DNA of 64,000 nucleotides, taken from NCBI GenBank assembly GCA_024704765.1, contig JAKMXF010000303.1, forward strand, positions 264,790 to 328,789, in the 5' to 3' direction. A program made the position numbers and the translations under genes. Position 1 is the stretch's first letter, and each line of letters begins with the position of its first letter. Of the stretch, positions 309 through 47,995 are shown piece by piece. Source of the DNA: Oopsacas minuta. Taxonomy: Eukaryota; Animalia; Porifera. The notes beneath the pieces were generated by a model. That model was not told the origin of the DNA. It was given only the letters and a program-made list of their open reading frames with translations, and ran no database searches.

Positions 309-3300
309 TCAGTGTCTGTATCTCTCTTTCTCTCTGTACCGATCTGAGTAAGATCTATGACGTGGATCTTCTGGGGAGCGAGACCGATCCCGTCTACTAT
401 CTCTCTCATAATCTCTCTTCCTTTCCCGGTCTCTATCTCTATCATGTCTGTGTCCACGATGTCTGGATAAGTATAATAATTATTAAATTTAACACTATGT
501 AATTGAATACTAATGGTATTATACATGCCTGGAGCTTGAACTGCTTCTGGAATGATATCGCTTCTCTATATCCTTCATCCGTTCGTATAGAGACTCTATG
601 ACTAGCTGATTACCGTTTGAGTCAGGACCTGACTGCTTCACTAGGGATATAGCAGTACGTAGCGTGTCAATAGCAGAGTCATAATTCCCCAGATTTGATT
701 CTGCTACAGCTCTCTGAATTGCGTTATATGACACAGCCTTGTTACGCTGAGTAGCATCATTGTCTTCAATTCCTTATACAGAATAGTATAAATACTGATT
801 GTAAATAAATAAATATTTGATTTTATTGTATTGTATTTAGAAACACATAGGATGATATTTTAAGTCTTATTCACCTAACCTAAAAGAGAGAAGAATATAA
901 ATATCCGAGATTAATACAGCAACGGATACAACTCACATAGCTGACTGTGAGAACATCTCAACCTACAATAAAGTGAGTTATAATTAGATGAAGTAGTTAT
1001 CATCAGCTATGTATATGTACTACATACATGAGGCTGTGCTCCTGAGAAGAAGGCTGGATTAACGTGTGGAGCTAGGCCCTTGGTGCCTCCCAATCCTCCC
1101 AATACTATACAATAGAATAATATTTAACTGGTGATATAGTAAGGTTAGTTAGTTAGCATACCTCCTGCATGTAGAGATACCTGCGGTACGGGAGGAGGGA
1201 GTCCAGCTAAGGTAAGACCAGGGGGAGGAACATGGTGAGGGGGTATAGGAGGGAGGAGTTGTGATGGGTCTGCTATGAGAGGTCCTGTAGCTGAGAGGAC
1301 AGGAGGAGGAGGTAGACCTGCGTAAGTTTGTAGACCTACATACATCTAGTATAATATAATTACCATATAATTACTCAGGATAAGTACCTATAGGTCCTGC
1401 TGGTGGAAACATAGTTGGAGCTGAGAAGGCCTTTACTTCTGTAGATTTCTTCATTGTATTCTGACCTGCTTTCATAGGACCTCTCCCGCCTTTAGAATCT
1501 GATGCTAGATTGTGTGACGTATAAATTAAGAAGGATACATAGGTATAATAGAATCACTAGAATGTAATCTTACCTTCTCTGGACCTCTGCTCAAACTGGT
1601 GAGCACTCGTCTTGGAAGCCATAGCTAATACTGGAATCTGGCCATGGATAACACTAAATGAGTTCAATTAAGTTTTGGGTGAACTTCGTTGAATGAATTT
1701 AATCACGGAATTATGTTTATTCTAGGCTCATGTACTCACCAGTCTTTTAGCTTCTCCACTGCTTCTTGTGCTGTCTCCTCGTTCTTTAGCTCGATTAGAG
1801 CAAACCTAAATTTAGAAACATCGTTTTAATAGCGAATACACTACCTCTATGCTGTGATATAATACCTTATCAACTAGTTGTACAGGAGCATACTCTTTAT
1901 GTATAATTATTAATATATAATTTTAATTACCCTTTAGATTGTCCATTTGCTCTATTTTCGAAGAATTTAATAGCCTTAACTTCCTGGAATTCATTCTCCT
2001 TCAACAGCTGAACTAAGTCTACATCAGTTGTCCACTAAATGAGAATATTTGATATACAAACAGAAATCAGTGTGTAAATTCATAGTAAGTATAGAAACTT
2101 AATGTTATAATTGAATTTAATAAATTTTCCAAAAACATACAGAATTATACTAAAATACAAATACGTAGTACATTACAAATGTAGTATTTCTATCCCTTAT
2201 ATCGGTATAACAGAATTAACTATATAGCTATCATGTAATACAAATGCTATATTGAAGTCCAGATGGAGAGATGACTGTCTTTAGCCTTCAGGGCAAATTC
2301 AGCATTTAACAATATATGCAATAAATCTACACAAAATCGCTACAGCCATCTTATCAGATACAGCATGAGGTATGTAGTAATACAAAATGCGCTTAGTTAC
2401 AAGCCCACCAAGTGGGATTACAAACAATTTTGATCTATACAATTTGACGTATAACTATCCGTTAAGTAACAGAAGGTAGTATAGCATAAATTAACACAAA
2501 ATAATCAGCTAAATACCCATGTCAGGTTGCCAATGAAGATGGCGTTCCTCTTATTTGGGTCAAATGAGATCCCTAGTGTAGAGTTGTCCACTGAAGTGCT
2601 CTGAGAAGTTTTTCCAGCAGGAATTCCCTCCTGTGTCTGTTTGGATAACAGCTCTGCCTTAAGCCGAGCTGACTCTGGTTAGAGAGAGTTTGAAATACAA
2701 GCATTCGAGAATGTTCACAACATAGTGTCATTTCAAAAAGTACAATTATTCGAAATGTGAAAATTATATCTATATATGTTAGTTATTAATTATCGCTGTA
2801 TAGTAGTGATAATATAATGTTTACCTCCTAATTCTTCGTTGTTATTGTCAGCCTCAAGTGCCAGCTATAATGTAGACAAAATATTATATAAACGTGTGCA
2901 GACATTCGCAAGAAGGCTGGAAGATTTTGCGGCCAGGGTCATCACCAACCTGACAGTTTCCGCCGATCCTGGCACCTAACATTCGATTATTTTATATTTC
3001 CACAAGTACTGTCAAATCAGGTTAAAACGAAGCTTAAGTGACTGCAATTATTTCGTATTTCAATATAATCGATGAAATAAATGTTACTTCGACGCTTTGG
3101 GTCCTTATTGTTATAATTTCAGACTTGGATATAAGCGGGTGTTTGGATATATCCGTATTCGATATAAATGAAGTCGACTGTATATACAGTGAACTCCCGT
3201 TAAAACGAAGTGATTCTCTAGCCCCTATAACTTTGAAAGTAATTGATTTTACTCCGCTTATAACGAAGTGAAATCGTAGCCCCGAGCACTTCGTTATAAC

Positions 3301-16210: not shown

Positions 16211-18679
16211 ATGTTCCCCTACCCCTCAGGGGCTCTCCACATGGGGCATGTGCGTGTGTACACCATCAGTGACACACTCGCACGCTATCACAGAGCCAGA
16301 GGTGAGAGTGTGCTACACCCGATGGGCTGGGATGCATTCGGTCTGCCAGCAGAGAACGCAGCCATCGAGAGAGGACTGAGTCCAGTCGAGTGGACACAGA
16401 CCAACATCAGTCAGATGCGTCAGCAACTGAATCAGCTGAACTTCCAGTTCGACTGGGAGAGGGAAGTGACCACGTGCAGACCCGACTACTACCGCTGGAC
16501 ACAGTGGCTGTTCACACAGCTGTATCGTCATGATCTGGCCTATCAGAGGGAAGCCTACGTGAACTGGGATCCTGTGGACGGGACAGTACTGGCCAATGAA
16601 CAGGTGGATGCTGAGGGGAGGTCGTGGCGGTCCGGTGCAAGGGTAGAGCGTAGACGACTGAACCAGTGGTTCGTACGTCTCACACACTACAGAGAAGCCC
16701 TCCTGAAGGGTCTAGCCGAGCTGGACTGGCCGGAGAAGGTGAAGCAGATGCAGCGGCACTGGATCGGTCGAGCTGAGGGGTATCTGATCAGTTTCCAGTT
16801 ACAGGAAGGAGATGGCAGTGTGAGGGAGGGCGACAAGAGACAGGAGCCGTTGAGGGTATTCACTACCAGCCCAGAGAAGCTCTTGGACACCACCTTTCTG
16901 GGTGTGTCACGTGAACACGCGTTGAGTGAGGGGTATTCGCGTGATACACACCTGAAGCACACTTCCAGCAGTGAGGCAGACTGTGAGAGGGAGGGCATCA
17001 GGCAGGAGACGGTGAGAGGCGAACTGCTACCAGTTCGAGCTGTCCATCCTATTACTGGTGAGCTGCTACCTGTACTCAAGTTGGACCATGTGGTACAGGA
17101 GTATGGCACGGGTGTGGTGATGGGTGTACCGGCTCGCAACAAGAGAGATGCTCGTGTGGCAGAGCACTGGGGCTGTGCTGCTGTATCGGGAGTAGCTCTC
17201 TCTCCGGATGGTACTCGCGTACAGTCCGGTGACATGCTGGGGATGAGTGTGGAGGATGCACGGGGTGTTATCCTGTCTCAGAACTGGATTCAGGCTAGTG
17301 AGCAGTTCCGTCTACGTGACTGGCTCATCTCACGACAGCGCTACTGGGGCTGTCCTATCCCGATGGTACACTGTCCCACATGTGGGACCATCCCTGTGCC
17401 TGAACAGGAGCTGCCTGTCCTTCTACCGACTGACCTGCAGCTGACGGGTAGAGGCAGTTCCCCGCTACGCACCTGTCAACAGTTCACGTCTACTGTCTGT
17501 CCTCAGTGCGGCAGTCTACACGCACAGCGGGAGACAGACACCATGGATACGTTCATCGACTCTTCCTGGTACTATATGCGCTATTGTGACCCTCAGAATG
17601 GATCAGCACTGTGTGGAGTAAAGGCAGCACGCCGCTGGCTACCAGTAGACACGTATATCGGCGGGATTGAGCATGCAGTTCTCCACTTGCTGTATGCACG
17701 CTTCGTGAGCCACTTCCTCTACGACTTGGGCGTGTCACCTGAACCGGAGCCTTTCAGGAAGCTGATCACCCAGGGCATGGTGACCGGCAAGACATACCGG
17801 CTGATCGGCTCCCTGCGTTACATCCAGCCCGAGCAGGTGGAGACAGGAGCGGGAGGGGTGCTGGTAGAGAGGGGCTCACAGCAGAGGGTGGAGATGTTCT
17901 GGGAGAAGATGTCCAAGTCGAAGTACAACGGTGTGAATCCACAGGTTATGGTGGAGAAGTACGGCGCGGATGTAGTCAGGCTGTTCCTACTCTTTAAGTC
18001 ACCCCCACATCTGGACCTACAGTGGGATGAGACGGCCATTGTGGGCATTGTACGCTGGAGGGCTAAACTGGAGGGAATACTCGCTGAGCACGTCCGCCAC
18101 TACCACGCCAGTCAGGATACACACAGGGAGACTGCACCTGCTGACGGGGAGGTGCTAGAGGGCCTGGAGTCACTCACCCAGAGAGCAGTACATGTTTCTA
18201 CACAGGCTATGACGCACATCTTCAACTTCAACTCCCTCATCGCCCAGCTCATGAAGCTCACCAACTATATACGCAAGCACAAGGATGTGCTGTCTGGCAC
18301 ACACGCATGCCAGCACAGTCTGAGGACGCTACTGGCGCTCTTACACCCCATGGCTCCACATATCTCCACTGATCTCTGGAGCCGACTGGAGAGGGATACA
18401 TACTCGCCAACCATCCGTGCCATGTGTCGCGGTATCAAGGCAGACACTGCAGGCCAGGAGCACCAGGGAGCAGGCAAGCCTATCCCATTCTCTGTCCTGC
18501 TGGACAACCAGTGGGTGTGCACTATCTATATCCCCCTGGGTGTCACAGACTCAGAGGAGGGCATACGTCAGGCAGTACTAGCACACCCGTGTGTACAGGC
18601 GGTATTGGGGGGTCAGCAGCCCTGCAGAATGGTCTCTCAGATCAATCAGAAAACTATTGTATTGATCACCAAAGAATGA
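16211..18679 (+). CDS. LARS2: 5'-truncated duplicate of mitochondrial leucyl-tRNA synthetase (822 aa from MFPYPSG); coding status uncertain
   Basis: HIGH (HMGH) and KMSKS motifs intact. There is an in-frame TGA at 16145-16147, and the upstream region is frameshifted relative to the minus copy, so there is no N-terminal extension. Ends ...KTIVLITKE. Confidence 0.6.
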   Translation: MFPYPSGALHMGHVRVYTISDTLARYHRARGESVLHPMGWDAFGLPAENAAIERGLSPVEWTQTNISQMRQQLNQLNFQFDWEREVTTCRPDYYRWTQWLFTQLYRHDLAYQREAYVNWDPVDGTVLANEQVDAEGRSWRSGARVERRRLNQWFVRLTHYREALLKGLAELDWPEKVKQMQRHWIGRAEGYLISFQLQEGDGSVREGDKRQEPLRVFTTSPEKLLDTTFLGVSREHALSEGYSRDTHLKHTSSSEADCEREGIRQETVRGELLPVRAVHPITGELLPVLKLDHVVQEYGTGVVMGVPARNKRDARVAEHWGCAAVSGVALSPDGTRVQSGDMLGMSVEDARGVILSQNWIQASEQFRLRDWLISRQRYWGCPIPMVHCPTCGTIPVPEQELPVLLPTDLQLTGRGSSPLRTCQQFTSTVCPQCGSLHAQRETDTMDTFIDSSWYYMRYCDPQNGSALCGVKAARRWLPVDTYIGGIEHAVLHLLYARFVSHFLYDLGVSPEPEPFRKLITQGMVTGKTYRLIGSLRYIQPEQVETGAGGVLVERGSQQRVEMFWEKMSKSKYNGVNPQVMVEKYGADVVRLFLLFKSPPHLDLQWDETAIVGIVRWRAKLEGILAEHVRHYHASQDTHRETAPADGEVLEGLESLTQRAVHVSTQAMTHIFNFNSLIAQLMKLTNYIRKHKDVLSGTHACQHSLRTLLALLHPMAPHISTDLWSRLERDTYSPTIRAMCRGIKADTAGQEHQGAGKPIPFSVLLDNQWVCTIYIPLGVTDSEEGIRQAVLAHPCVQAVLGGQQPCRMVSQINQKTIVLITKE

Positions 18680-18733: not shown

Positions 18734-21658
18734 CTACTCATTAAATAATACAATAGTTTTCTGATTGATCTGAGAGACCATTCTGCAGGGCTGCTGACCC
18801 CCCAATACCGCCTGTACACACGGGTGTGCTAGTACTGCCTGACGTATGCCCTCCTCTGAGTCTGTGACACCCAGGGGGATATAGATAGTGCACACCCACT
18901 GGTTGTCCAGCAGGACAGAGAATGGGATAGGCTTGCCTGCTCCCTGGTGCTCCTGGCCTGCAGTGTCTGCCTTGATACCGCGACACATGGCACGGATGGT
19001 TGGCGAGTATGTATCCCTCTCCAGTCGGCTCCAGAGATCAGTGGAGATATGTGGAGCCATGGGGTGTAAGAGCGCCAGTAGCGTCCTCAGACTGTGCTGG
19101 CATGCGTGTGTGCCAGACAGCACATCCTTGTGCTTGCGTATATAGTTGGTGAGCTTCATGAGCTGGGCGATGAGGGAGTTGAAGTTGAAGATGTGCGTCA
19201 TAGCCTGTGTAGAAACATGTACTGCTCTCTGGGTGAGTGACTCCAGGCCCTCTAGCACCTCCCCGTCAGCAGGTGCAGTCTCCCTGTGTGTATCCTGACT
19301 GGCGTGGTAGTGGCGGACGTGCTCAGCGAGTATTCCCTCCAGTTTAGCCCTCCAGCGTACAATGCCCACAATGGCCGTCTCATCCCACTGTAGGTCCAGA
19401 TGTGGGGGTGACTTAAAGAGTAGGAACAGCCTGACTACATCCGCGCCGTACTTCTCCACCATAACCTGTGGATTCACACCGTTGTACTTCGACTTGGACA
19501 TCTTCTCCCAGAACATCTCCACCCTCTGCTGTGAGCCCCTCTCTACCAGCACCCCTCCCGCTCCTGTCTCCACCTGCTCGGGCTGGATGTAACGCAGGGA
19601 GCCGATCAGCCGGTATGTCTTGCCGGTCACCATGCCCTGGGTGATCAGCTTCCTGAAAGGCTCCGGTTCAGGTGACACGCCCAAGTCGTAGAGGAAGTGG
19701 CTCACGAAGCGTGCATACAGCAAGTGGAGAACTGCATGCTCAATCCCGCCGATATACGTGTCTACTGGTAGCCAGCGGCGTGCTGCCTTTACTCCACACA
19801 GTGCTGATCCATTCTGAGGGTCACAATAGCGCATATAGTACCAGGAAGAGTCGATGAACGTATCCATGGTGTCTGTCTCCCGCTGTGCGTGTAGACTGCC
19901 GCACTGAGGACAGACAGTAGACGTGAACTGTTGACAGGTGCGTAGCGGGGAACTGCCTCTACCCGTCAGCTGCAGGTCAGTCGGTAGAAGGACAGGCAGC
20001 TCCTGTTCAGGCACAGGGATGGTCCCACATGTGGGACAGTGTACCATCGGGATAGGACAGCCCCAGTAGCGCTGTCGTGAGATGAGCCAGTCACGTAGAC
20101 GGAACTGCTCACTAGCCTGAATCCAGTTCTGAGACAGGATAACACCCCGTGCATCCTCCACACTCATCCCCAGCATGTCACCGGACTGTACGCGAGTACC
20201 ATCCGGAGAGAGAGCTACTCCCGATACAGCAGCACAGCCCCAGTGCTCTGCCACACGAGCATCTCTCTTGTTGCGAGCCGGTACACCCATCACCACACCC
20301 GTGCCATACTCCTGTACCACATGGTCCAACTTGAGTACAGGTAGCAGCTCACCAGTAATAGGATGGACAGCTCGAACTGGTAGCAGTTCGCCTCTCACCG
20401 TCTCCTGCCTGATGCCCTCCCTCTCACAGTCTGCCTCACTGCTGGAAGTGTGCTTCAGGTGTGTATCACGCGAATACCCCTCACTCAACGCGTGTTCACG
20501 TGACACACCCAGAAAGGTGGTGTCCAAGAGCTTCTCTGGGCTGGTAGTGAATACCCTCAACGGCTCCTGTCTCTTGTCGCCCTCCCTCACACTGCCATCT
20601 CCTTCCTGTAACTGGAAACTGATCAGATACCCCTCAGCTCGACCGATCCAGTGCCGCTGCATCTGCTTCACCTTCTCCGGCCAGTCCAGCTCGGCTAGAC
20701 CCTTCAGGAGGGCTTCTCTGTAGTGTGTGAGACGTACGAACCACTGGTTCAGTCGTCTACGCTCTACCCTTGCACCGGACCGCCACGACCTCCCCTCAGC
20801 ATCCACCTGTTCATTGGCCAGTACTGTCCCGTCCACAGGATCCCAGTTCACGTAGGCTTCCCTCTGATAGGCCAGATCATGACGATACAGCTGTGTGAAC
20901 AGCCACTGTGTCCAGCGGTAGTAGTCGGGTCTGCACGTGGTCACTTCCCTCTCCCAGTCGAACTGGAAGTTCAGCTGATTCAGTTGCTGACGCATCTGAC
21001 TGATGTTGGTCTGTGTCCACTCGACTGGACTCAGTCCTCTCTCGATGGCTGCGTTCTCTGCTGGCAGACCGAATGCATCCCAGCCCATCGGGTGTAGCAC
21101 ACTCTCACCTCTGGCTCTGTGATAGCGTGCGAGTGTGTCACTGATGGTGTACACACGCACATGCCCCATGTGGAGAGCCCCTGAGGGGTAGGGGAACATG
21201 GAAAGAATGTAGACCTCCCTAGCCCCAACGGTTTCCTCCCCCTTCTCGTCATGATACATTCTCAGGTTTGTGTGAAATAGTGATGAGCTTGATTTGTTAG
21301 TAGGCACCTTATAGTTCGAATAATTATGTTGCGGAATATATCCACGCCGAATTTCCTTTATAATACATTTTCCATTGAGAAGACCTCCTGCACCCCATAG
21401 CCTCTGATTCTGTCGCGAATGAAGAAAACGATGCAGAGCAGATGAGAATAAATATTGCCCCCTATCTGGGGTTGAGTATTTGAAGTGATGTAGTTGTGAA
21501 AAACTAAGTGATCTGTGTGAAGATTGGAATGTAAAATTGAAATTTTTGGTAACAATAGGTAAGGCAATAAATGGTATAGAAATATTTGAGGAATAAATTT
21601 GTGGTTTGATATAAAGTATAAGCGTACTAATGAATATCAGAAAAAGAATGGTAATCAA
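18734..21658 (-). CDS. LARS2: Mitochondrial leucine--tRNA ligase (full copy; true start unresolved)
   Basis: MFPYPSGALHMGHVRVYTISD, WDPVDGTVLANEQVD..GRSWRSGARVE, DWLISRQRYWGCPIP, DTMDTFIDSSWYY, KMSKSKYNG. The ORF opens at TTG 21658; the first in-frame ATG is at 21259. Ends ...KTIVLFNE. Confidence 0.93.
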   Translation of the reverse strand: MITILFLIFISTLILYIKPQIYSSNISIPFIALPIVTKNFNFTFQSSHRSLSFSQLHHFKYSTPDRGQYLFSSALHRFLHSRQNQRLWGAGGLLNGKCIIKEIRRGYIPQHNYSNYKVPTNKSSSSLFHTNLRMYHDEKGEETVGAREVYILSMFPYPSGALHMGHVRVYTISDTLARYHRARGESVLHPMGWDAFGLPAENAAIERGLSPVEWTQTNISQMRQQLNQLNFQFDWEREVTTCRPDYYRWTQWLFTQLYRHDLAYQREAYVNWDPVDGTVLANEQVDAEGRSWRSGARVERRRLNQWFVRLTHYREALLKGLAELDWPEKVKQMQRHWIGRAEGYLISFQLQEGDGSVREGDKRQEPLRVFTTSPEKLLDTTFLGVSREHALSEGYSRDTHLKHTSSSEADCEREGIRQETVRGELLPVRAVHPITGELLPVLKLDHVVQEYGTGVVMGVPARNKRDARVAEHWGCAAVSGVALSPDGTRVQSGDMLGMSVEDARGVILSQNWIQASEQFRLRDWLISRQRYWGCPIPMVHCPTCGTIPVPEQELPVLLPTDLQLTGRGSSPLRTCQQFTSTVCPQCGSLHAQRETDTMDTFIDSSWYYMRYCDPQNGSALCGVKAARRWLPVDTYIGGIEHAVLHLLYARFVSHFLYDLGVSPEPEPFRKLITQGMVTGKTYRLIGSLRYIQPEQVETGAGGVLVERGSQQRVEMFWEKMSKSKYNGVNPQVMVEKYGADVVRLFLLFKSPPHLDLQWDETAIVGIVRWRAKLEGILAEHVRHYHASQDTHRETAPADGEVLEGLESLTQRAVHVSTQAMTHIFNFNSLIAQLMKLTNYIRKHKDVLSGTHACQHSLRTLLALLHPMAPHISTDLWSRLERDTYSPTIRAMCRGIKADTAGQEHQGAGKPIPFSVLLDNQWVCTIYIPLGVTDSEEGIRQAVLAHPCVQAVLGGQQPCRMVSQINQKTIVLFNE

Positions 21659-39820: not shown

Positions 39821-41092
39821 TTAACGGGATATAATATTTTGACTGGGGAAAGTAGGATAGATTTGGAATGCCTGTACTTTAGAGAGTAGAACAAGAGTAA
39901 TACCAGAAAGGATGACAAAAATAGACACAAGGAATATAAATAAATTCTTCCAACCTCTGTAAGCAATTATACTCCAGAGGAATCCAATAGTAGGAGTAGC
40001 TGATGCAATTATAGGGAAGGTCACAGCTGACGACATTTTTTGGTTGAGGAACGCCCACAACGATATAGCTATGCCAGTGAATATCCCTACAATAAGGGCA
40101 GGGAGTATAGACCGAGGTAGTATGCGTGGTGCATTACTCATATACAGAGAGTACAGTACCATGAATAGAGTAGAAGTCATAAACACACCAGTTGTATAGG
40201 GGAATATATAGTCTAGAGAATTATAGCTGTAATAAGAATTACTATCAGCTAGAGTTTGTAGTATCCGCATAGGTAGGAAATGGGTACCCCACGCTATACC
40301 CATGAGTATTGAGAGAATATAGCCTATAACTTTCTTCTTGAATGGACTGAGTGTGTATAAATATCCTCTTAGTAGTCCCAACCTACCAAAATTCCTGGCA
40401 TTACGGTATATTTCAGGAGTAGGATAACCTGGTGCAGACATTAATTTGTTTAGATTGTTATATGAATTATTACTATTGATAAGTAATGTAGTATTAATAT
40501 TGTAAGTATCTGTACGGTGTTCTTTCAGGAAAGCTAAGAGAATTACTCCAGACACACACATTACCAATCCACCGTAGTTAAAGAATGGAATACATAGCTT
40601 TTCATATTGTACTCCCATCATACTCAGGAATCCTGTACTCCACCCACTCCCAATGAATACTAAGCTCCACATTAGAACTCCTGTATTAAACCCAACTAAT
40701 CGTATCATTGGAATTAGAAAAACGTTACCCCCGGACCATATGACACCTCCTAATATAGCTAGCGGGTAGAAATGAGCTGAGGACTGTATTAAGTGCACAA
40801 CTAATCCACATATCCATACTCCAGTACATACCATCCACTGAAAGAATATACCATCTCCAATATTGTATCTCTTAAGCAGAACATAGTTACTACCCAATAA
40901 CATAGCAGGTATAAATATGAGGAGAGAGTCCTTCACTCCAATACTGGTGGTACAGAATTGAGTAGAATTGGAGATGTTATACCAGGCATGTGTTGTGGTA
41001 TGTGTTGTTGTGTATGGCAATACTTGCAATAGAGAAGAAATTAGTAGAAATTGTACAACAAAAAAAGAAGAGCTAAGTGTGAAAATCTTCAT
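39821..41092 (-). CDS. TMEM144: Transmembrane protein 144 (DMT-superfamily transporter-like), intronless 423 aa
   Basis: GDGIFFQW, FYPLAILGGVIWSGGN, GVLMWS, LDYIFPYTTGVFMTST, VTFPII. Confidence 0.88.
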   Translation of the reverse strand: MKIFTLSSSFFVVQFLLISSLLQVLPYTTTHTTTHAWYNISNSTQFCTTSIGVKDSLLIFIPAMLLGSNYVLLKRYNIGDGIFFQWMVCTGVWICGLVVHLIQSSAHFYPLAILGGVIWSGGNVFLIPMIRLVGFNTGVLMWSLVFIGSGWSTGFLSMMGVQYEKLCIPFFNYGGLVMCVSGVILLAFLKEHRTDTYNINTTLLINSNNSYNNLNKLMSAPGYPTPEIYRNARNFGRLGLLRGYLYTLSPFKKKVIGYILSILMGIAWGTHFLPMRILQTLADSNSYYSYNSLDYIFPYTTGVFMTSTLFMVLYSLYMSNAPRILPRSILPALIVGIFTGIAISLWAFLNQKMSSAVTFPIIASATPTIGFLWSIIAYRGWKNLFIFLVSIFVILSGITLVLLSKVQAFQIYPTFPSQNIISR

Positions 41093-41786
41093 TCATTTAA
41101 TGTACAGAATTGTTTTGTTGAGATAAAATACATTTACAGCTACCCAATAGAAACTCAGTAAGATATTAGATTTGGAAATGGTATAATGTAAAATTACTAA
41201 TTTAGTTCTACGCACTCATTTTTATGTACACAGACAATACTTAATACGGCATCTCTTAATAATGAGTGCATATGACTACATATAAATACTGTATTGACTC
41301 GAACAATAGCCCCTCGCTCACCAATGAGCTAACTAGAAATAATTATTAATTATATAACTGGGGTATAAATATAAATAACTCTCAGTAGCACAGATTAGTT
41401 GGTGTATTTCTACAGGGCAGTGGCGTAGACAGGGTGGCACAAGTGAAGCATTTGCGCCACCTGTTTTTACTTCGCGCCTGGTGACATCGCACCACATGCC
41501 CCAATTTCGGAGTAAGGAAAGTAATATTTTCGTGCGTTAAATGATTTAAATCATTTCACACTGTAGCAATTATCAGTGAATATTTGTAAATTCTCAATTT
41601 CAAGGAAAATACAACAGAAATATTAACACAGTCCTAATGAGCTTATTTCAGTTGAACATTCGTCTAATTATAATTTAATTAATACACATGTAAGAATATA
41701 TAGCATTGTTCAAAAACATATATTCTACCATAAAATACAACTTTCCTGCAAATTGACTAGCCCGTATGATACAGGGTAATCATCTC

Positions 41787-44700
41787 TCAACCATCAAGAG
41801 CTTCCAATACTGTACGACGATGCCAGAATGCTACCTGTAAAATGAAGCAGCAAGCTAGACTAGCAATGAAGAAAGTAGCATGGATTGAGTACAAAGTGAA
41901 GATAATGAAGTTGAGTGGCACACCAATGGTGCTTATAGAAACTAGTGCTATCTTATCTCCCATCTTGTAAGCGTTGATAAAATTGAAATGGAAAGGTATA
42001 TTTATTGATATAATGATAACTTCAAAAATAGTCAGCCAGCTCAAACGGTGTAGGATTAATATCTCAGCGAAATAATAAGCGTGTAGGAAGAGATCAAATG
42101 CAGCAAGGGAAGGCCAGAGCCTATTCTCAGAGTGAATAGAAGAGATCAATAAATTATCATTCTGCATCAACAACAGTATTACGCTACCAAATAGGAAAGA
42201 AAGTTCAATCTCGTGTTGAAACGGAGAAAAGATGAGAGAAATATACGCAACGAAACAACTAAAGTTAGCTATAAGAGGATAATATGTCGTCTCAATCTCC
42301 ATAAACCCAGAGGTCTCATCTCCCCCCAGTGCGTATTTCTTCACCTGCTGCTTCAGCTTATATCCTACCGCAATTACCAGACAGTTAATCACCCAGAACT
42401 GAGAGCACTTTATATCGTTAACACGAAACTGAATTTGAACATAAGCGAATACGAACTGTAGTACAAATGTACCTAGCAACACGAAATATGTGAGTATGTC
42501 TTGGTAACAAGGAGGCTGTTGAGGAGATGCTACTACAGCTCTATAGAGGAGATATGACGTCACACTTCCTGATAGACCGTATATTTGCCAGAGCAGGTTA
42601 GGAAATGGACCTAACAACAAAGCTATCCTCAGTCCTATCAACCAACCAGATACAAGACAAGTAGTTTGAATGAATCTGAATCTCTGTTTCCACTCCAGGA
42701 TATGAGATAAGAAGAAATGTATTCCAACAAATGATATAATAGAGAAGAGAGACCAGTCAATAACTAGTCTCCAGCTTACAGCTAGTAGCAATCCCTTCTC
42801 TCTGAGAGGAGAGATATCACTCTCCATGCCTAGTATAATATGGATAGCACTGAGTAGCTCTGATATCTCTAGACTGGGTTTAAAACTGTTGAGTAGAGTG
42901 GAACAGCCTCCACACACAATGACAACCCCTGCTAGTAACTTCTTGGTAGCCTGACCTCTCATCTGGTCAGGTCGTGCCAGGAGCAGACCCACGGATAAGC
43001 AGAAGGCAGTTAGTGTGATAGCTAACAGATCTGCTGGAGTAGGAGAGTTGATGTAAGCAAGAGAGAGAGCTGGCTTAATCAGTGATTGTTGAGACAGTAA
43101 TAACGTCAGTAGCATGATACCAGCATAAGCTAATCTCTTTATACCTACTAGCTCTGTGTCAAACCTCAGAGCTCCTAGCGTCAGTAATGCTATTACGAAG
43201 CCTGGCAGGAAGCTGGGGAGAGCTGATGTCTATGATATAAACAATAATATCACGTATAACTTGATTAGTATCAATTAGATTAGTGGTAACCTTTTTCGCC
43301 CGTGGACAACCTATACCAAATTTAACACATTCTGTTGACCTCCTCTCATAGACTGCAATACAAAACAATCCAGGTAGAGAACAGCTGTATTAGATCAGTG
43401 GTTCTCAACCTAGGGTCTGTGGCCCTAAAAAGTTTGCATTATCTTTACTGGCTAGCGGTCTACAGACCCAATAAAATTGGCCAAAGGGGTCCGTGGGTGA
43501 AAAAGGTAGAATCACTGTATTAGATCATAAGCATACTTACCTGTGAGAACTCTATGTTAGTGTGAGATAGGTCAGGGAGCATCCATACTAGTTTGGTTAA
43601 GTGCAGACTAGCACTGACCCATGAGACCGTGAGTTTAAGAGACTTGCTCCTGTGTAGACGGTCTGTTACCATCATGCCTGCAGCAGAGGTAGATAGGAAC
43701 ATCCAGTAGGAGTAGAGCTCTTCTCTCACCAGCCAATACTCACAGAGTAGTATCCCGGATAAATGTAACAGATACAGAGGAGAGGGTATATTCCTCCATT
43801 TGTACATTAATACTACAGACAGGATAGCTGTACAGAGGAGTAGCAGTAGGAACAGCTGGAGAGAAAACTCTATCCCCCATGCTATTAGGGGCCCGGAATA
43901 TTCTAGTCTCCAGGGGAGGAAGTAAGAAGCTGTGACGTAGAATATACTCAGCAGAACACATACTAGTTTGAGTCTAGCAGATCGTTTCTCTGCTGCACTG
44001 ACTATAGTAGCAAATAGACCAGCTAATACTAGCAGGATAGGGAGAGATACAGACCAGTTAATTAAGAATGTCTCTTTAGAGAATATGAGACTACCTGTAA
44101 CAACTGCTACACATCCAGACACAGCCCTGACATATACCAGAGGAGAGCTGTTACCCATTGTATACCCACCCAAGAACCAGAATAGTCTAGCTTTAGATAG
44201 GAGAGTGAGTAGAAATATTTGGAGAGAGAATACCCATACTAGTCTAATCGGTTGCAGCTGCTCTCCTAGTATCAGAACCTTATATATATTACAGATGAAT
44301 TCTACTCCACAGGGAGCCATGAGAGAGCCAGCTGTTAGGATAGCTGTCATAGGACGAGTAAGTATAACTACTGGGAACTTAGTAGAACCGGGACGATAGA
44401 AGGAGGAAGTAATGGGTACAAAATACAGGAAGGCAATGGCTGACATCACAAAACATGAGATAGTACCTATATAGTGTATACTGAATAGGAAGAGACAAGC
44501 CCACAGGTACACAAGGAATAGGAGAGGAGGAACTAGTACAAACATTAGCTCCTCTATCAGTACACACATAGCAGGCTCTGTAACTCTCAAATGTGGGAAT
44601 TGTAGAAGTGTCCATCCTCCTAGACCTATTATGAAGCTATAGGTAAGACTCAGGAGGGGTGTGTTCATGAAAGATCTCCATATCAGGGGGAGTATGGAGA

Positions 44701-45690
44701 AGAAGTTAGCAACCTACACAATAGATAAGGAATACCATATTAATAGTAGTAACTAGTGCTCATATATTAGCAATATTCCCTTAATGAGAATTTTTTCATG
44801 GATTTAGAGTCCATTTTGTATTAGAAATAATTATTTCAATACAGTAGACCCTCTCTAATCCGAACAGGCTAAAGATGCTATACAACTTTTGGAAATGTTG
44901 TAAAATGTTCATAAATAACTATTTGTATCCAATTCTACTGGGGACAAATACATATTACTATTTACACATGTTGGCAGCCTTTTCATCGTATGTACAACAT
45001 TCGAAAAATGCACCATAGATCCTATAGTATTGTTTCAATGCATTTCGCTAATCAGAACGAATTAGGTATATTTGAATTGAAACAATGCTGTTTGGATTAG
45101 CGAGGATGTACTGTAGAAGTTCGCGTATTAGTAAGGGAAATTAGTGCAAATACGACTTGCCAATAGGAAAACTCCACTGAACTGCTATGATGCTGTATAA
45201 TATAACTCACCTCAGCTGATATTATCGTAATCAGACACACCAATAGAGAGTGTTTAGGTAAACTGAAATTAAGTGTGAAATATATAGCTAGAGCTCCTAT
45301 ACAGAGAGTAGCTAGGAGACCCTTGCCTGAGAGAGATAGGACCACGAATAGGGCGGGGAATATACCTATAGCTAATCTCAAATTGTGTGAGAAGGGAGAG
45401 TTCTGGAACCAGGAGGGTGGATGTTTAAAATCTTTAGATTTGATAGGATTCTGGTTAATGAGGTCTTTGAAAGGAGCTTCATACTCCTGTTGTATCTGTG
45501 TAGCATCGTCTAGAGATATGGTGTTAGGAACCCTAGCTCTAAGACCACTGCCCTCTCCATCTATATCTACAGGCGCCAATACAGATGTATAGAGTTCTGA
45601 GGTGTTGTTACCTGGATCTTGTTGTAAATTTGTTACTATCGTTACGTTATGACCTGGCACTATCTCAGATTGTTCTGTTAGAGTCGCCAT
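41787..45690 (-). CDS. NO EXINE FORMATION 1 (NEF1)-like polytopic membrane protein, join(45211..45690,43541..44713,41787..43229), 1031 aa
   Basis: Three hydrophobic ORFs join through phase-0 GT-AG introns (exon lengths 480, 1173, 1443 nt). Co-linear similarity to plant NEF1, as recalled, at N-terminal, middle and C-terminal segments. Confidence 0.8.
43396..43517. mobile_element. hAT (Charlie-like) MITE with perfect 8-bp TSD, in NEF1-like intron 2
   Basis: cagtggttctcaacct...aggtagaatcactg flanked by TATTAGAT on both sides; same family as 27613-27699. Confidence 0.85.
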
Positions 45691-46483: not shown

Positions 46484-47995
46484 TCATTTATTTCTTATCA
46501 TAATCTTTATGTTGAGACAATTTCCAATTAAGAGATCTCTATTGAAGATGTAATCATGAGATATCAAATTAGCACATCCGTAAGCAGAGTTCCTGGGTCC
46601 CTCCGGTCTGACAAAGAAATGAATGTTCTTCTCGCTGAGTATGATAGAGTTTGTTACAGCTTCGTTACCTTGTTTGTCTAGAATAGCGAAAATAAACCTG
46701 TCATTCCCCATTCTGAAAGGCCAGGCAATCTCATTATCATACGGGCCCTTGAATAGCGTGATAAATAGTCCCATGTTTGGGATAGAATTACAGAAGAATC
46801 TGACTGATGGATGGAATAGGTAGCGACCTACGTAGAAGGAGGGTCCCCACTTCTCCTTCTTTTCTTCCATCATCTTAGATATATTCTCTATCTTCCAAAC
46901 AACCCCTACCCCCCTAATATCCTGACTTCTGAGTAGAATCTGAACCTCTCTGTTGAGATCCTCAATTGGATCAGTTCTATTACGCACACAGGTTGTAACA
47001 GTGATACAGTCTCCAGAGCAGTAGTCTGAGAGGAGAGAGGAGATGGATACCAGCTCAGCGGTACCAGGAGCCTTGTTCCTACTGCTTTCTGGCCTTTTGA
47101 AGTTATCAGTATTCGATTCACTAGTAGATACAGTGAGAAGTGTCACTTCAGTCCCACATGTCTTTCTCAAGGTGAATACGAACTTCTCTCTGTCCAGGCG
47201 GAAGGGCCAGATCATGTCTTGATCTCTCTCACCTCTCACCAGACACAAGAACAGAGCTACGTACGAGGTATCTTCATACCCGAAAGCAAGCATTATCTGA
47301 AATTTGTATCCATCTACGTAGAAGTAAGGGCCCCATATCTTAGCTCTCTCTTCTATTTGCTGTGCTACACCAGTGACTACCCACGACACTCCGTCTGCCC
47401 GTATTCTATTACTGAGCTTTACAGCCTCTATCTGAGCAGCTAGTAACCTTGTCTGTTGTTTTAAACTAGATTCTAACTCTAAATTCCTAACCGTCAATGC
47501 TTCTATCTTTATATTGCTACTATCTAATTTCAGTGTACACTTTTTAACTTGTTCTAGCAGCTGTAGCATATGTTCATTACAGCTCTCTTTTAAATGAGAA
47601 TCAATCTTTCCTCTTTGTATCAGTGTTTTACAGCCGTATTCTGAATATACACAGCTCTTAGCTCTGTACACGCAATGCTCAAAATGTTGTTGTACTTTAG
47701 GTATTACATCTACCCATATACAGCCGTGTGTGTGTAGAGGACATTGTATCCTGAGCTCTGCTACCGTCTCACCTACTACTCCAGGATCTACACCCTCACT
47801 ATGTGAATCATCGTGCTGTTTGAAACATTCTTCTCTCATAACTCCACCACACACACGACATATTAGCATCTTCTCCTCTAGCTCGGTTAACTCTTTAATT
47901 AGTAGATCCTTCCTGTATCCCCCTAGTACAGGTTGTTCATTGTTCTTTCCTACGTGCTCGTATAGTAACTCATACGCCGAAATATTCGTGCACAT
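46484..47995 (-). CDS. TRAF-like protein: degenerate RING, TRAF zinc finger, coiled coil, two tandem MATH domains; intronless 503 aa
   Basis: CRVC..., CPLHTHGC...HFEHC...CVYSEYGC...HLKESC.EHM, then two MATH repeats (WGPYFYVDGYKF...LFLCLVRGERDQDMIWPF; WGPSFYVGRYLF...LFITLFKGPYDNEIAWPF). Confidence 0.85.
   Translation of the reverse strand: MCTNISAYELLYEHVGKNNEQPVLGGYRKDLLIKELTELEEKMLICRVCGGVMREECFKQHDDSHSEGVDPGVVGETVAELRIQCPLHTHGCIWVDVIPKVQQHFEHCVYRAKSCVYSEYGCKTLIQRGKIDSHLKESCNEHMLQLLEQVKKCTLKLDSSNIKIEALTVRNLELESSLKQQTRLLAAQIEAVKLSNRIRADGVSWVVTGVAQQIEERAKIWGPYFYVDGYKFQIMLAFGYEDTSYVALFLCLVRGERDQDMIWPFRLDREKFVFTLRKTCGTEVTLLTVSTSESNTDNFKRPESSRNKAPGTAELVSISSLLSDYCSGDCITVTTCVRNRTDPIEDLNREVQILLRSQDIRGVGVVWKIENISKMMEEKKEKWGPSFYVGRYLFHPSVRFFCNSIPNMGLFITLFKGPYDNEIAWPFRMGNDRFIFAILDKQGNEAVTNSIILSEKNIHFFVRPEGPRNSAYGCANLISHDYIFNRDLLIGNCLNIKIMIRNK

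Follow-up and report, generated by a model that had tools for sequence, protein, structure and literature searches.

A glass-sponge gene for a large membrane protein and its possible kinship with plant NEF1

A gene of the glass sponge Oopsacas minuta encodes a 1031-aa membrane protein that may be a far-diverged member of the ancient eukaryotic lineage of plant NO EXINE FORMATION 1 (NEF1), inherited vertically and engaged in endomembrane lipid handling. We put the probability of this reading at roughly one half. It is possible, at odds a little short of even, that glass sponges are the only animals to have kept a NEF1-type membrane protein of ancient eukaryotic origin, and that it is under tighter constraint there than its neighbours. 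The gene lies at positions 41787-45690 on the minus strand of the window, by which we mean the whole stretch of 64,000 nucleotides that was analysed. The gene is real, nuclear and present in one copy, and its transcripts are spliced.

Gene structure, transcription and protein architecture

Three minus-strand open reading frames of the window (45097-45690, 43520-44668 and 41787-43115) join as three phase-0 exons, and the spliced product of 160, 391 and 480 aa is followed by TGA. Exon 1 (45211..45690, minus strand) starts with ATG and encodes a hydrophilic N-terminus of ~95 aa together with the first two hydrophobic helices. Exon 2 (43541..44713, minus strand) contributes ~11-12 membrane helices, and exon 3 (41787..43229, minus strand) a further ~12-13 with a few conserved polar loops. 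Intron 1 (44714..45210, minus strand; 497 nt) begins with the donor GTGAGT at 45210 and intron 2 (43230..43540, minus strand; 311 nt) with GTAAGT; both acceptors are AG. In the public RNA-type run X4, word depth was ~800-2400 on the exons versus 0-240 in the introns, falling to 0 at 43363-43513 within intron 2. Contigs from this run covered the exons alone and contained the joints 43229->43541 and 44713->45211, which match the predicted splice sites exactly and have GT..AG borders on the minus strand. Exon 3 had a single match in the sponge's own genome assembly (365 contigs, 61.46 Mb, ~37% GC), indicating a single-copy gene. The published O. minuta genome comprises 365 scaffolds and ~61 Mb at 36% GC, with 1.59 introns per gene (PMC10280926).

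Intron 1 also harbours a dispersed repeat of ~280 bp (roughly 44825-45119), at which the DNA word depth is 3-9 times that of the flanks. Genome-wide, 40 scored copies of this repeat were found at 74-82% identity, and a first look gave 252 candidates.

In the predicted protein, the hydrophilic N-terminus is followed by roughly 25 membrane helices joined by short loops, and the GRAVY values of exons 2 and 3 are 0.95 and 0.80, respectively. An earlier note, made from the sequence, had described a clean three-exon gene for a very hydrophobic protein of 1031 aa; the exons and the length were recovered unchanged, the joints are present in the run X4 contigs, and the hydropathy values and helix count agree with the description. 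The N-terminus was shown to be of cytosolic type and to bear a conserved motif, and a few of the inter-helix loops were shown to be polar and invariant within the sponge family. Comparison of exon 2 with exon 3 revealed no internal duplication. AlphaFold2 models of the two long exons, built on shallow family alignments, reached pLDDT values of 38.8 and 36.3 and were unusable.

The most conserved part of exon 1 (45295..45486, minus strand) spans the invariant columns of the exon-1 alignment and comprises the first helix and a juxtamembrane motif, EYEAPF..DLI.QNPIK..DF.HPP.WFQ..PFSHN. The end of exon 2 (43589..43714, minus strand) falls within a second conserved stretch, with invariant columns from Y334 to L375, reading CEYWLVREELY.YWMFL.TSAAGMMVTDRLH and onward. 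In exon 3, 42111..42281 (minus strand) falls within a strongly conserved region that has invariant columns from P318 to P373 and contains the blocks YPLIAN.SCF, SPFQHEIEL, LLLMQNDN and EN.LWPS. The three segments that had been quoted as resembling NEF1 are all present, at 45295-45408, inside the most conserved part of exon 1, and at 43589-43714 and 42111-42281; each falls within a strongly conserved stretch of the family.

A conserved sponge family with fixed introns and neighbours

Across five related loci the exon boundaries are identical wherever an exon falls inside the DNA examined, at 64-81% identity, and about seven further contigs also carry the gene. Exon 1 is 70-74% conserved in three relatives, and exon 3 has five relatives at 64-77% identity. 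For exon 2, a protein word search gave seven relatives at 63-80% identity; tblastn covered aa 1-391 in three relatives and ended at aa 223 in a fourth locus, which stops there at its own edge. The word-search matches are all unnamed open reading frames from ENA or Logan assemblies and have their gene order in common; the related ENA assemblies are ERZ25072740, ERZ25072730, ERZ25766962, ERZ20067936 and ERZ23489589. The genomes bearing the gene form a small set of relatives, presumably other hexactinellids.

The downstream neighbour, a single-exon TMEM144 gene (39821..41092, minus strand; Pfam PF07857, E=2.6e-65), is adjacent in all relatives, and the upstream neighbour, encoding a TRAF-type zinc-finger protein with two MATH domains (46484..47995, minus strand), is adjacent in two. 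In these loci TMEM144 reaches no more than 58-68% identity, and this comparison of identities shows the gene evolving more slowly than adjoining TMEM144 within the group. Synonymous sites are saturated among the relatives, for which dN/dS is 0.05-0.2. At the level of sequence, these comparisons show a sponge family under strong purifying selection, in which intron positions and neighbours are fixed.

Kinship with NEF1 and the competing explanations

The protein was shown to fall outside every family model searched. Pfam scans at E<=10 of each exon and of every family member gave noise and no family, NCBIfam at E<=10 likewise gave noise (e.g. oligosaccharide repeat polymerase at 12.6 bits), and the family profiles had no match at E<=10 among all PDB chain sequences. 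An exhaustive search of 1.84 billion protein representatives with the exon-3 profile (E<=0.001) found the family's own cluster only, and the exon-2 profile found nothing at E<=10 among candidates that share words with it and are 215-684 aa long, too short to include full-length NEF1. Word-index protein searches, made with exon 3, with exon 2 and with the profile of exon 2, yielded unnamed close kin only. Scans with family patterns, two of JGI metagenomes and one of GTDB genomes, brought up no relative. The earlier note had recognised no animal family in the protein, as the Pfam scans bear out for each exon, and had allowed that the family might prove widespread and already annotated in animals; the exon-3 search points instead to a narrow distribution.

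One explanation is that the family is restricted to glass sponges and unrelated to NEF1, having arisen in the hexactinellid stem or diverged past recognition from another polytopic protein. The resemblance to NEF1 would then reflect composition and architecture common to very long all-helical membrane proteins. It is favoured by the lack of any match outside the family in the Pfam, NCBIfam, PDB, protein, metagenome and prokaryote searches, and by the database members of the family's cluster, none of which carries a name. However, a protein of 1031 aa with 25 helices and a dN/dS of ~0.1 is unlikely to have arisen de novo. We consider a restricted family of this kind tenable, although we would wager against it.

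The ESM Atlas, which holds 7.7 million clusters, was queried with the two long exons. With exon 2, a eukaryotic cluster named 'No exine formation 1' (1111 aa, no common Pfam family) appeared at rank 2, with 146 of 256 features shared and a score of 0.83, a value in the chance-or-distant range of a scale on which scores <0.9 are rated as leads only. A bacterial cluster ranked above it, and the NEF1 cluster was absent from the matches listed for exon 3. The different neighbours of the two protein halves fit the restricted family, as do scores that nowhere exceed 0.90 and recognition values of 1179 and 1192, far under the 2300 typical of known families. On the other side, the Atlas and the earlier note independently named the same obscure family, although the resemblance stated in the note is in itself no evidence.

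Two further leads came from the weak Atlas neighbours of exon 2. DUF2339 (PF10101) and an unnamed Bacillota cluster resemble the sponge protein in having many helices and no soluble domains. DUF2339 was dropped after neither hmmscan nor a six-frame search across the whole genome gave a match at E<=10. Run against five and then 401 bacterial genomes, the latter Bacillota, the exon-2 profile gave no more than noise, four short matches whose E of 0.004-0.04 per genome is at the level of chance, and this lead was also rejected.

The best Atlas neighbours of exon 3 were the PIGG and PIGN clusters (score 0.90, 184 shared features), which would fit a C-terminal half descended from the membrane domain of the GPI ethanolamine-phosphate transferases (PIGN, PIGO, PIGG), diverged and with the catalytic domain lost. 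The membrane domains of these enzymes (PF19316 PIGO_PIGG and PF04987 PigN) are, like the sponge protein, polytopic, helical and of ER type, with a similar composition. Unlike it, the transferases have an N-terminal catalytic domain of alkaline-phosphatase type: no phosphatase-type domain was found in the sponge protein, exons 1-2 had no Pfam match, and only ~95 hydrophilic residues precede the first helix. Neither PF19316 nor PF04987 matched a member of the family at E<=10, and scans of the sponge's own genome with both models found true PIGO/PIGG and PIGN genes elsewhere and missed this one. Alignment of the family profile with the PIGO/PIGG and PIGN membrane regions by hhalign gave a probability of 0.1-0.2%. 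Judged on sequence, a GPI-transferase origin is thus close to refuted, and we hold it to be very improbable.

NEF1 has been known since 2004 as a protein needed for pollen exine, and we know of no account of its biochemistry. Arabidopsis NEF1 (At5g13390), together with its relatives in plants and algae, resembles the sponge protein in being very long (1111 aa for the cluster versus 1031 aa), nearly all membrane-spanning, devoid of Pfam domains and present in single or low copy. An architecture of ~1100 aa with a short hydrophilic N-terminus, helices up to the C-terminus and no known domain is found in the sponge protein; the topology of NEF1, a short hydrophilic N-terminus and then membrane helices, we take to be established. 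Sponges have no plastids, and the sponge protein, in its plastid-free animal host, is in this respect unlike NEF1, a plastid protein of plants. NEF1 has been described as an integral membrane protein of plastids, located in the envelope, that takes part in the accumulation of lipids and the formation of primexine (PMC3220415). We found no paper connecting NEF1 with sponges or animals; the supplements of the Oopsacas paper mention neither exine, NEF1 nor TMEM144, and the Aphrocallistes paper does not mention exine.

NEF1 was not found among the exon-3 profile matches (E<=0.001, 1.84 billion representatives) or the exon-2 profile matches (E<=10, 215-684 aa). By arithmetic, E<=0.001 in the library of 1.84 billion demands ~40 bits, here from less than half of the protein. 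Arabidopsis NEF1 is 41-44% identical to its moss and Selaginella counterparts (PMC3220415), but against Chlorella even the full-length protein scores only 69 bits (E=4e-12; PMC4928020). Because NEF1 diverges so fast, these negatives weigh little: non-detection would be expected even for true kin, which also counts against the restricted family. As a whole, the reading in the earlier note is partly supported; the homology that it proposed is matched by a sub-threshold Atlas neighbour for exon 2 and given no statistically valid support by the profile searches with exons 2 and 3. For the parts of the protein that were searched, the note's own ground for refutation, the lack of a significant full-length match to NEF1, formally applies, at the low power just described. 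Taken together, homology of the sponge protein to NEF1 is plausible, with the odds about even.

Were the two proteins kin, the gene might also have reached an ancestor of these sponges by transfer of a NEF1-type gene from an alga or protist. Exon 3 has no HMMER-detectable homologue in other animals, and the sole named eukaryotic neighbour, that of exon 2 in the Atlas, is a plant or algal family. However, the two spliceosomal introns of the gene occupy positions common to all relatives, the gene lies in a conserved animal gene neighbourhood, and its composition is native: GC3 is 0.35-0.43 versus 0.33-0.42 in neighbouring genes, and codon usage is similar (RSCU correlation 0.57-0.79). Any transfer must thus predate the radiation of the group, and the identities are so low that no donor can be named. 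The suggestion that the gene was acquired laterally found no support in its introns, GC3 or codon usage, and we regard transfer as improbable.

Proposed role and significance

Under descent from the NEF1 lineage, the sponge gene would be a far-diverged member of an ancient eukaryotic lineage that it shares with plant NEF1. In the sponge the gene would have been inherited vertically, and other animals would have lost it or altered it until it can no longer be recognised. The protein may work inside an endomembrane on a lipid or lipid-linked substrate; a carrier, a scramblase or a transferase embedded in the membrane is thought of here, not a channel or a receptor. The grounds for proposing lipid handling are the all-membrane architecture, the conserved His/Asp/Glu/Asn residues in the loops, the lipid phenotype seen in nef1 plants, and the language-model neighbours.

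Until a function or a firm homology is established, the finding has limited practical value. If the protein is indeed an animal relative of NEF1, the family predates plastids and pollen, and its core function would be narrowed to something general in membrane lipid handling. The 'pollen-wall' protein NEF1 would then be part of a pre-plant, plastid-independent lipid-handling system that is open to study outside plants. Glass sponges have unusual syncytial, silica-building tissues. Even without the link to NEF1, this is a large, slow-evolving protein of 25 helices limited to one early-branching animal lineage and unnamed in the protein sources searched, and it is therefore a candidate for lineage-specific membrane biology.

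Gene model, expression and genome setting

The gene was delineated by an ORF scan of the window, which revealed three long ORFs on the minus strand of 41787-45690. Exon 1 (45690-45211) begins with an ATG, ends at a GTGAGT donor and encodes 160 aa. It is followed by intron 1 (497 nt), exon 2 (44713-43541; AG acceptor, GTAAGT donor, 391 aa), intron 2 (311 nt) and exon 3 (43229-41787), which runs from an AG acceptor to a TGA stop and encodes 480 aa. All exon junctions read in phase 0, and the translated exons sum to 1031 aa (160 + 391 + 480), in agreement with the three-exon, 1031-aa gene described in the earlier note.

Expression was assessed in four public sequencing runs from one sample. Three of these showed even, DNA-like depth across the stretch. 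In the fourth, X4, word depth was ~800-2400 over the exons and 0-240 over the introns, and contigs contained the joints 43229->43541 and 44713->45211, GT..AG on the minus strand, which are exactly the splice junctions derived from the sequence. Because of this exon-only depth and the exon joints, we infer that X4, whose run type is not recorded, is RNA; if so, transcription and splicing follow the gene model given above. In two of the four runs, contigs differed from the window at 41737 (A>G), 42648 (A>G) and 44101 (C>T), differences that are most simply allelic. Intron 1 carries a dispersed repeat of ~280 bp (44825-45119), for which 252 first-look candidates were found in the same genome; the 40 of these that were scored had 74-82% identity. 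DNA word depth over the repeat, probably a short non-autonomous transposable element, was 3-9x that of its flanks.

The assembly of the hexactinellid O. minuta has been reported to have 36% GC, 1.59 introns per gene and a mean intron length of 341 bp (PMC10280926); GC in the assembly of the window was ~37%. A match search of 365 contigs (61,460,524 bases) showed the gene to be single-copy, and its GC3 and codon usage are in line with those of neighbouring genes. Upstream lies a single-exon gene (46484-47995, minus strand) encoding a TRAF-type zinc finger and two MATH domains, which adjoins the gene in two relatives too. Elsewhere in the window, a LeuRS gene (16211-18679, plus strand) with a mirror ORF (18734-21658, minus strand) is located in a 55%-GC island. 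Its top-ranked relatives in a prokaryote genome scan were picocyanobacteria (Cyanobium, Synechococcus; 45-48% identity), with Gamma- and Alphaproteobacteria ranking below them (38-44%), an unexpected closeness for a mitochondrial-type LeuRS.

A conserved all-membrane protein family

Residues 1 to ~95 of the protein are hydrophilic and the remainder is hydrophobic, with GRAVY values of 0.95 for exon 2 and 0.80 for exon 3, which bears out its earlier description as very hydrophobic. Both a scan of hydropathy and the helices called in otherwise poor structure models point to ~25 membrane helices joined by short loops. AlphaFold2 models of exons 2 and 3, built from shallow alignments, were unusable (pLDDT 38.8 and 36.3), and comparison of exon 2 with exon 3 found no internal duplication. 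An invariant juxtamembrane motif in exon 1 directly precedes the first helix, and the few invariant polar loop residues are His, Asp, Glu, Asn and Arg.

Word-index searches returned five proteins for exon 3 and seven for exon 2, at 63-80% identity, all of them unnamed ORFs from ENA or Logan assemblies on ~12 separate contigs. Five of these loci were fetched, and the window exons were aligned to them by tblastn. Each exon aligned end to end wherever it was present: exon 3 (aa 1-480) in every locus, exon 2 (aa 1-391) in three, being cut by the locus edge in the fourth and lying outside the fifth, and exon 1 as far as aa 160 in three. It follows that the relatives have their introns at the same positions. 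The introns vary in length between 53 nt and ~5.4 kb; intron 2 is expanded to >5 kb in two relatives (L004:510-5886; L005 upstream of 5887), containing in L004 an opposite-strand ZER1-like ORF (783-3167), and measures 53-131 nt at the same position in other relatives.

Synonymous sites were saturated (pS 0.52-0.80), with dN of 0.10-0.27 and dN/dS of 0.05-0.2. TMEM144, the gene directly downstream in 5/5 loci, showed 58-68% identity versus 64-81% for the membrane protein, which is thus slower-evolving than a family that Pfam recognises across eukaryotes. An RWD-domain gene follows TMEM144 in 4/5 loci, and the TRAF/MATH gene lies upstream in 2/5. The encoded all-membrane protein is conserved and expressed, and its short, cytosol-type head is conserved as well.

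Lateral acquisition had been raised as one origin of the gene. A recent transfer is disfavoured, since the introns are shared, codon usage is native and the animal neighbours are conserved; this part of the proposal gained no support. It is simpler to suppose that the gene descended vertically and was either lost elsewhere or altered there past recognition; an ancient horizontal transfer is a less likely origin.

Searches for kin outside the family

Exons were queried one at a time. No match outside the family was found in Pfam (E<=10, each exon and each family member) or NCBIfam, and the family profiles matched none of the PDB sequences at E<=10. The exon-2 profile retrieved nothing beyond the family in a word-index search at E<=10, nor did the exon-3 profile in an exhaustive HMMER search of 1.84 billion cluster representatives, and no relative emerged from two scans of metagenomes or from one of prokaryote genomes. 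The family is without a name in every source searched, consistent with the first impression that it belonged to no recognised animal family.

Other leads were rejected. In the ESM Atlas language-model feature search, the neighbours of exon 3 were membrane domains of GPI ethanolamine-phosphate transferases (score 0.90); the Pfam models match the sponge's real PIGO/PIGG and PIGN on other contigs, not this gene, and comparison of those membrane regions with the family profile gave a probability of 0.1-0.2%. A genome scan found no DUF2339. Run against 401 Bacillota genomes, the exon-2 profile gave four short matches at different query positions, at chance level (E 0.004-0.04 per genome).

The NEF1 question and a proposed function

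The earlier note had likened three segments of the protein to plant NEF1 (NO EXINE FORMATION 1), and all three fall within strongly conserved stretches of the family. For exon 2, the Atlas ranked a eukaryotic cluster, 'No exine formation 1' (1111 aa), second among 7.7 million clusters, below a bacterial cluster, with a score of 0.83, a lead only by the tool's own calibration. It is striking that, out of so many, the same obscure family was named. Furthermore, the sponge protein resembles NEF1 in overall length, a short hydrophilic head, membrane helices extending to the C-terminus and the lack of a known domain. The HMMER check gave no NEF1 match, but was run with the exon-3 profile, less than half of the protein, and by our own arithmetic E<=0.001 in the exhaustive library requires ~40 bits. 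Arabidopsis NEF1 shares 41-44% identity with its moss and Selaginella counterparts (PMC3220415), and against Chlorella protothecoides it reaches, at full length, no more than 69 bits (E=4e-12; PMC4928020), showing that NEF1 diverges fast. The exon-3 negative therefore has little force, because a true plant-animal homologue could give <40 bits from under half the protein. We put the probability of true homology to NEF1 at about one half: the observation itself is sound, and the reading built on it is plausible but unproven.

The protein might act within an endomembrane on a lipid or lipid-linked substrate, as an embedded carrier, scramblase or transferase. We offer this tentatively, as a guess prompted by the all-membrane build without a soluble domain, given which a receptor or channel would be less likely. 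Such a role is in keeping with the lipid and sterol-ester phenotype that nef1 plants show, as well as with the kinds of protein placed nearby by the feature searches. A confirmed link to NEF1 would raise the significance of the gene; if the link were refuted, it would be a lineage-restricted orphan.
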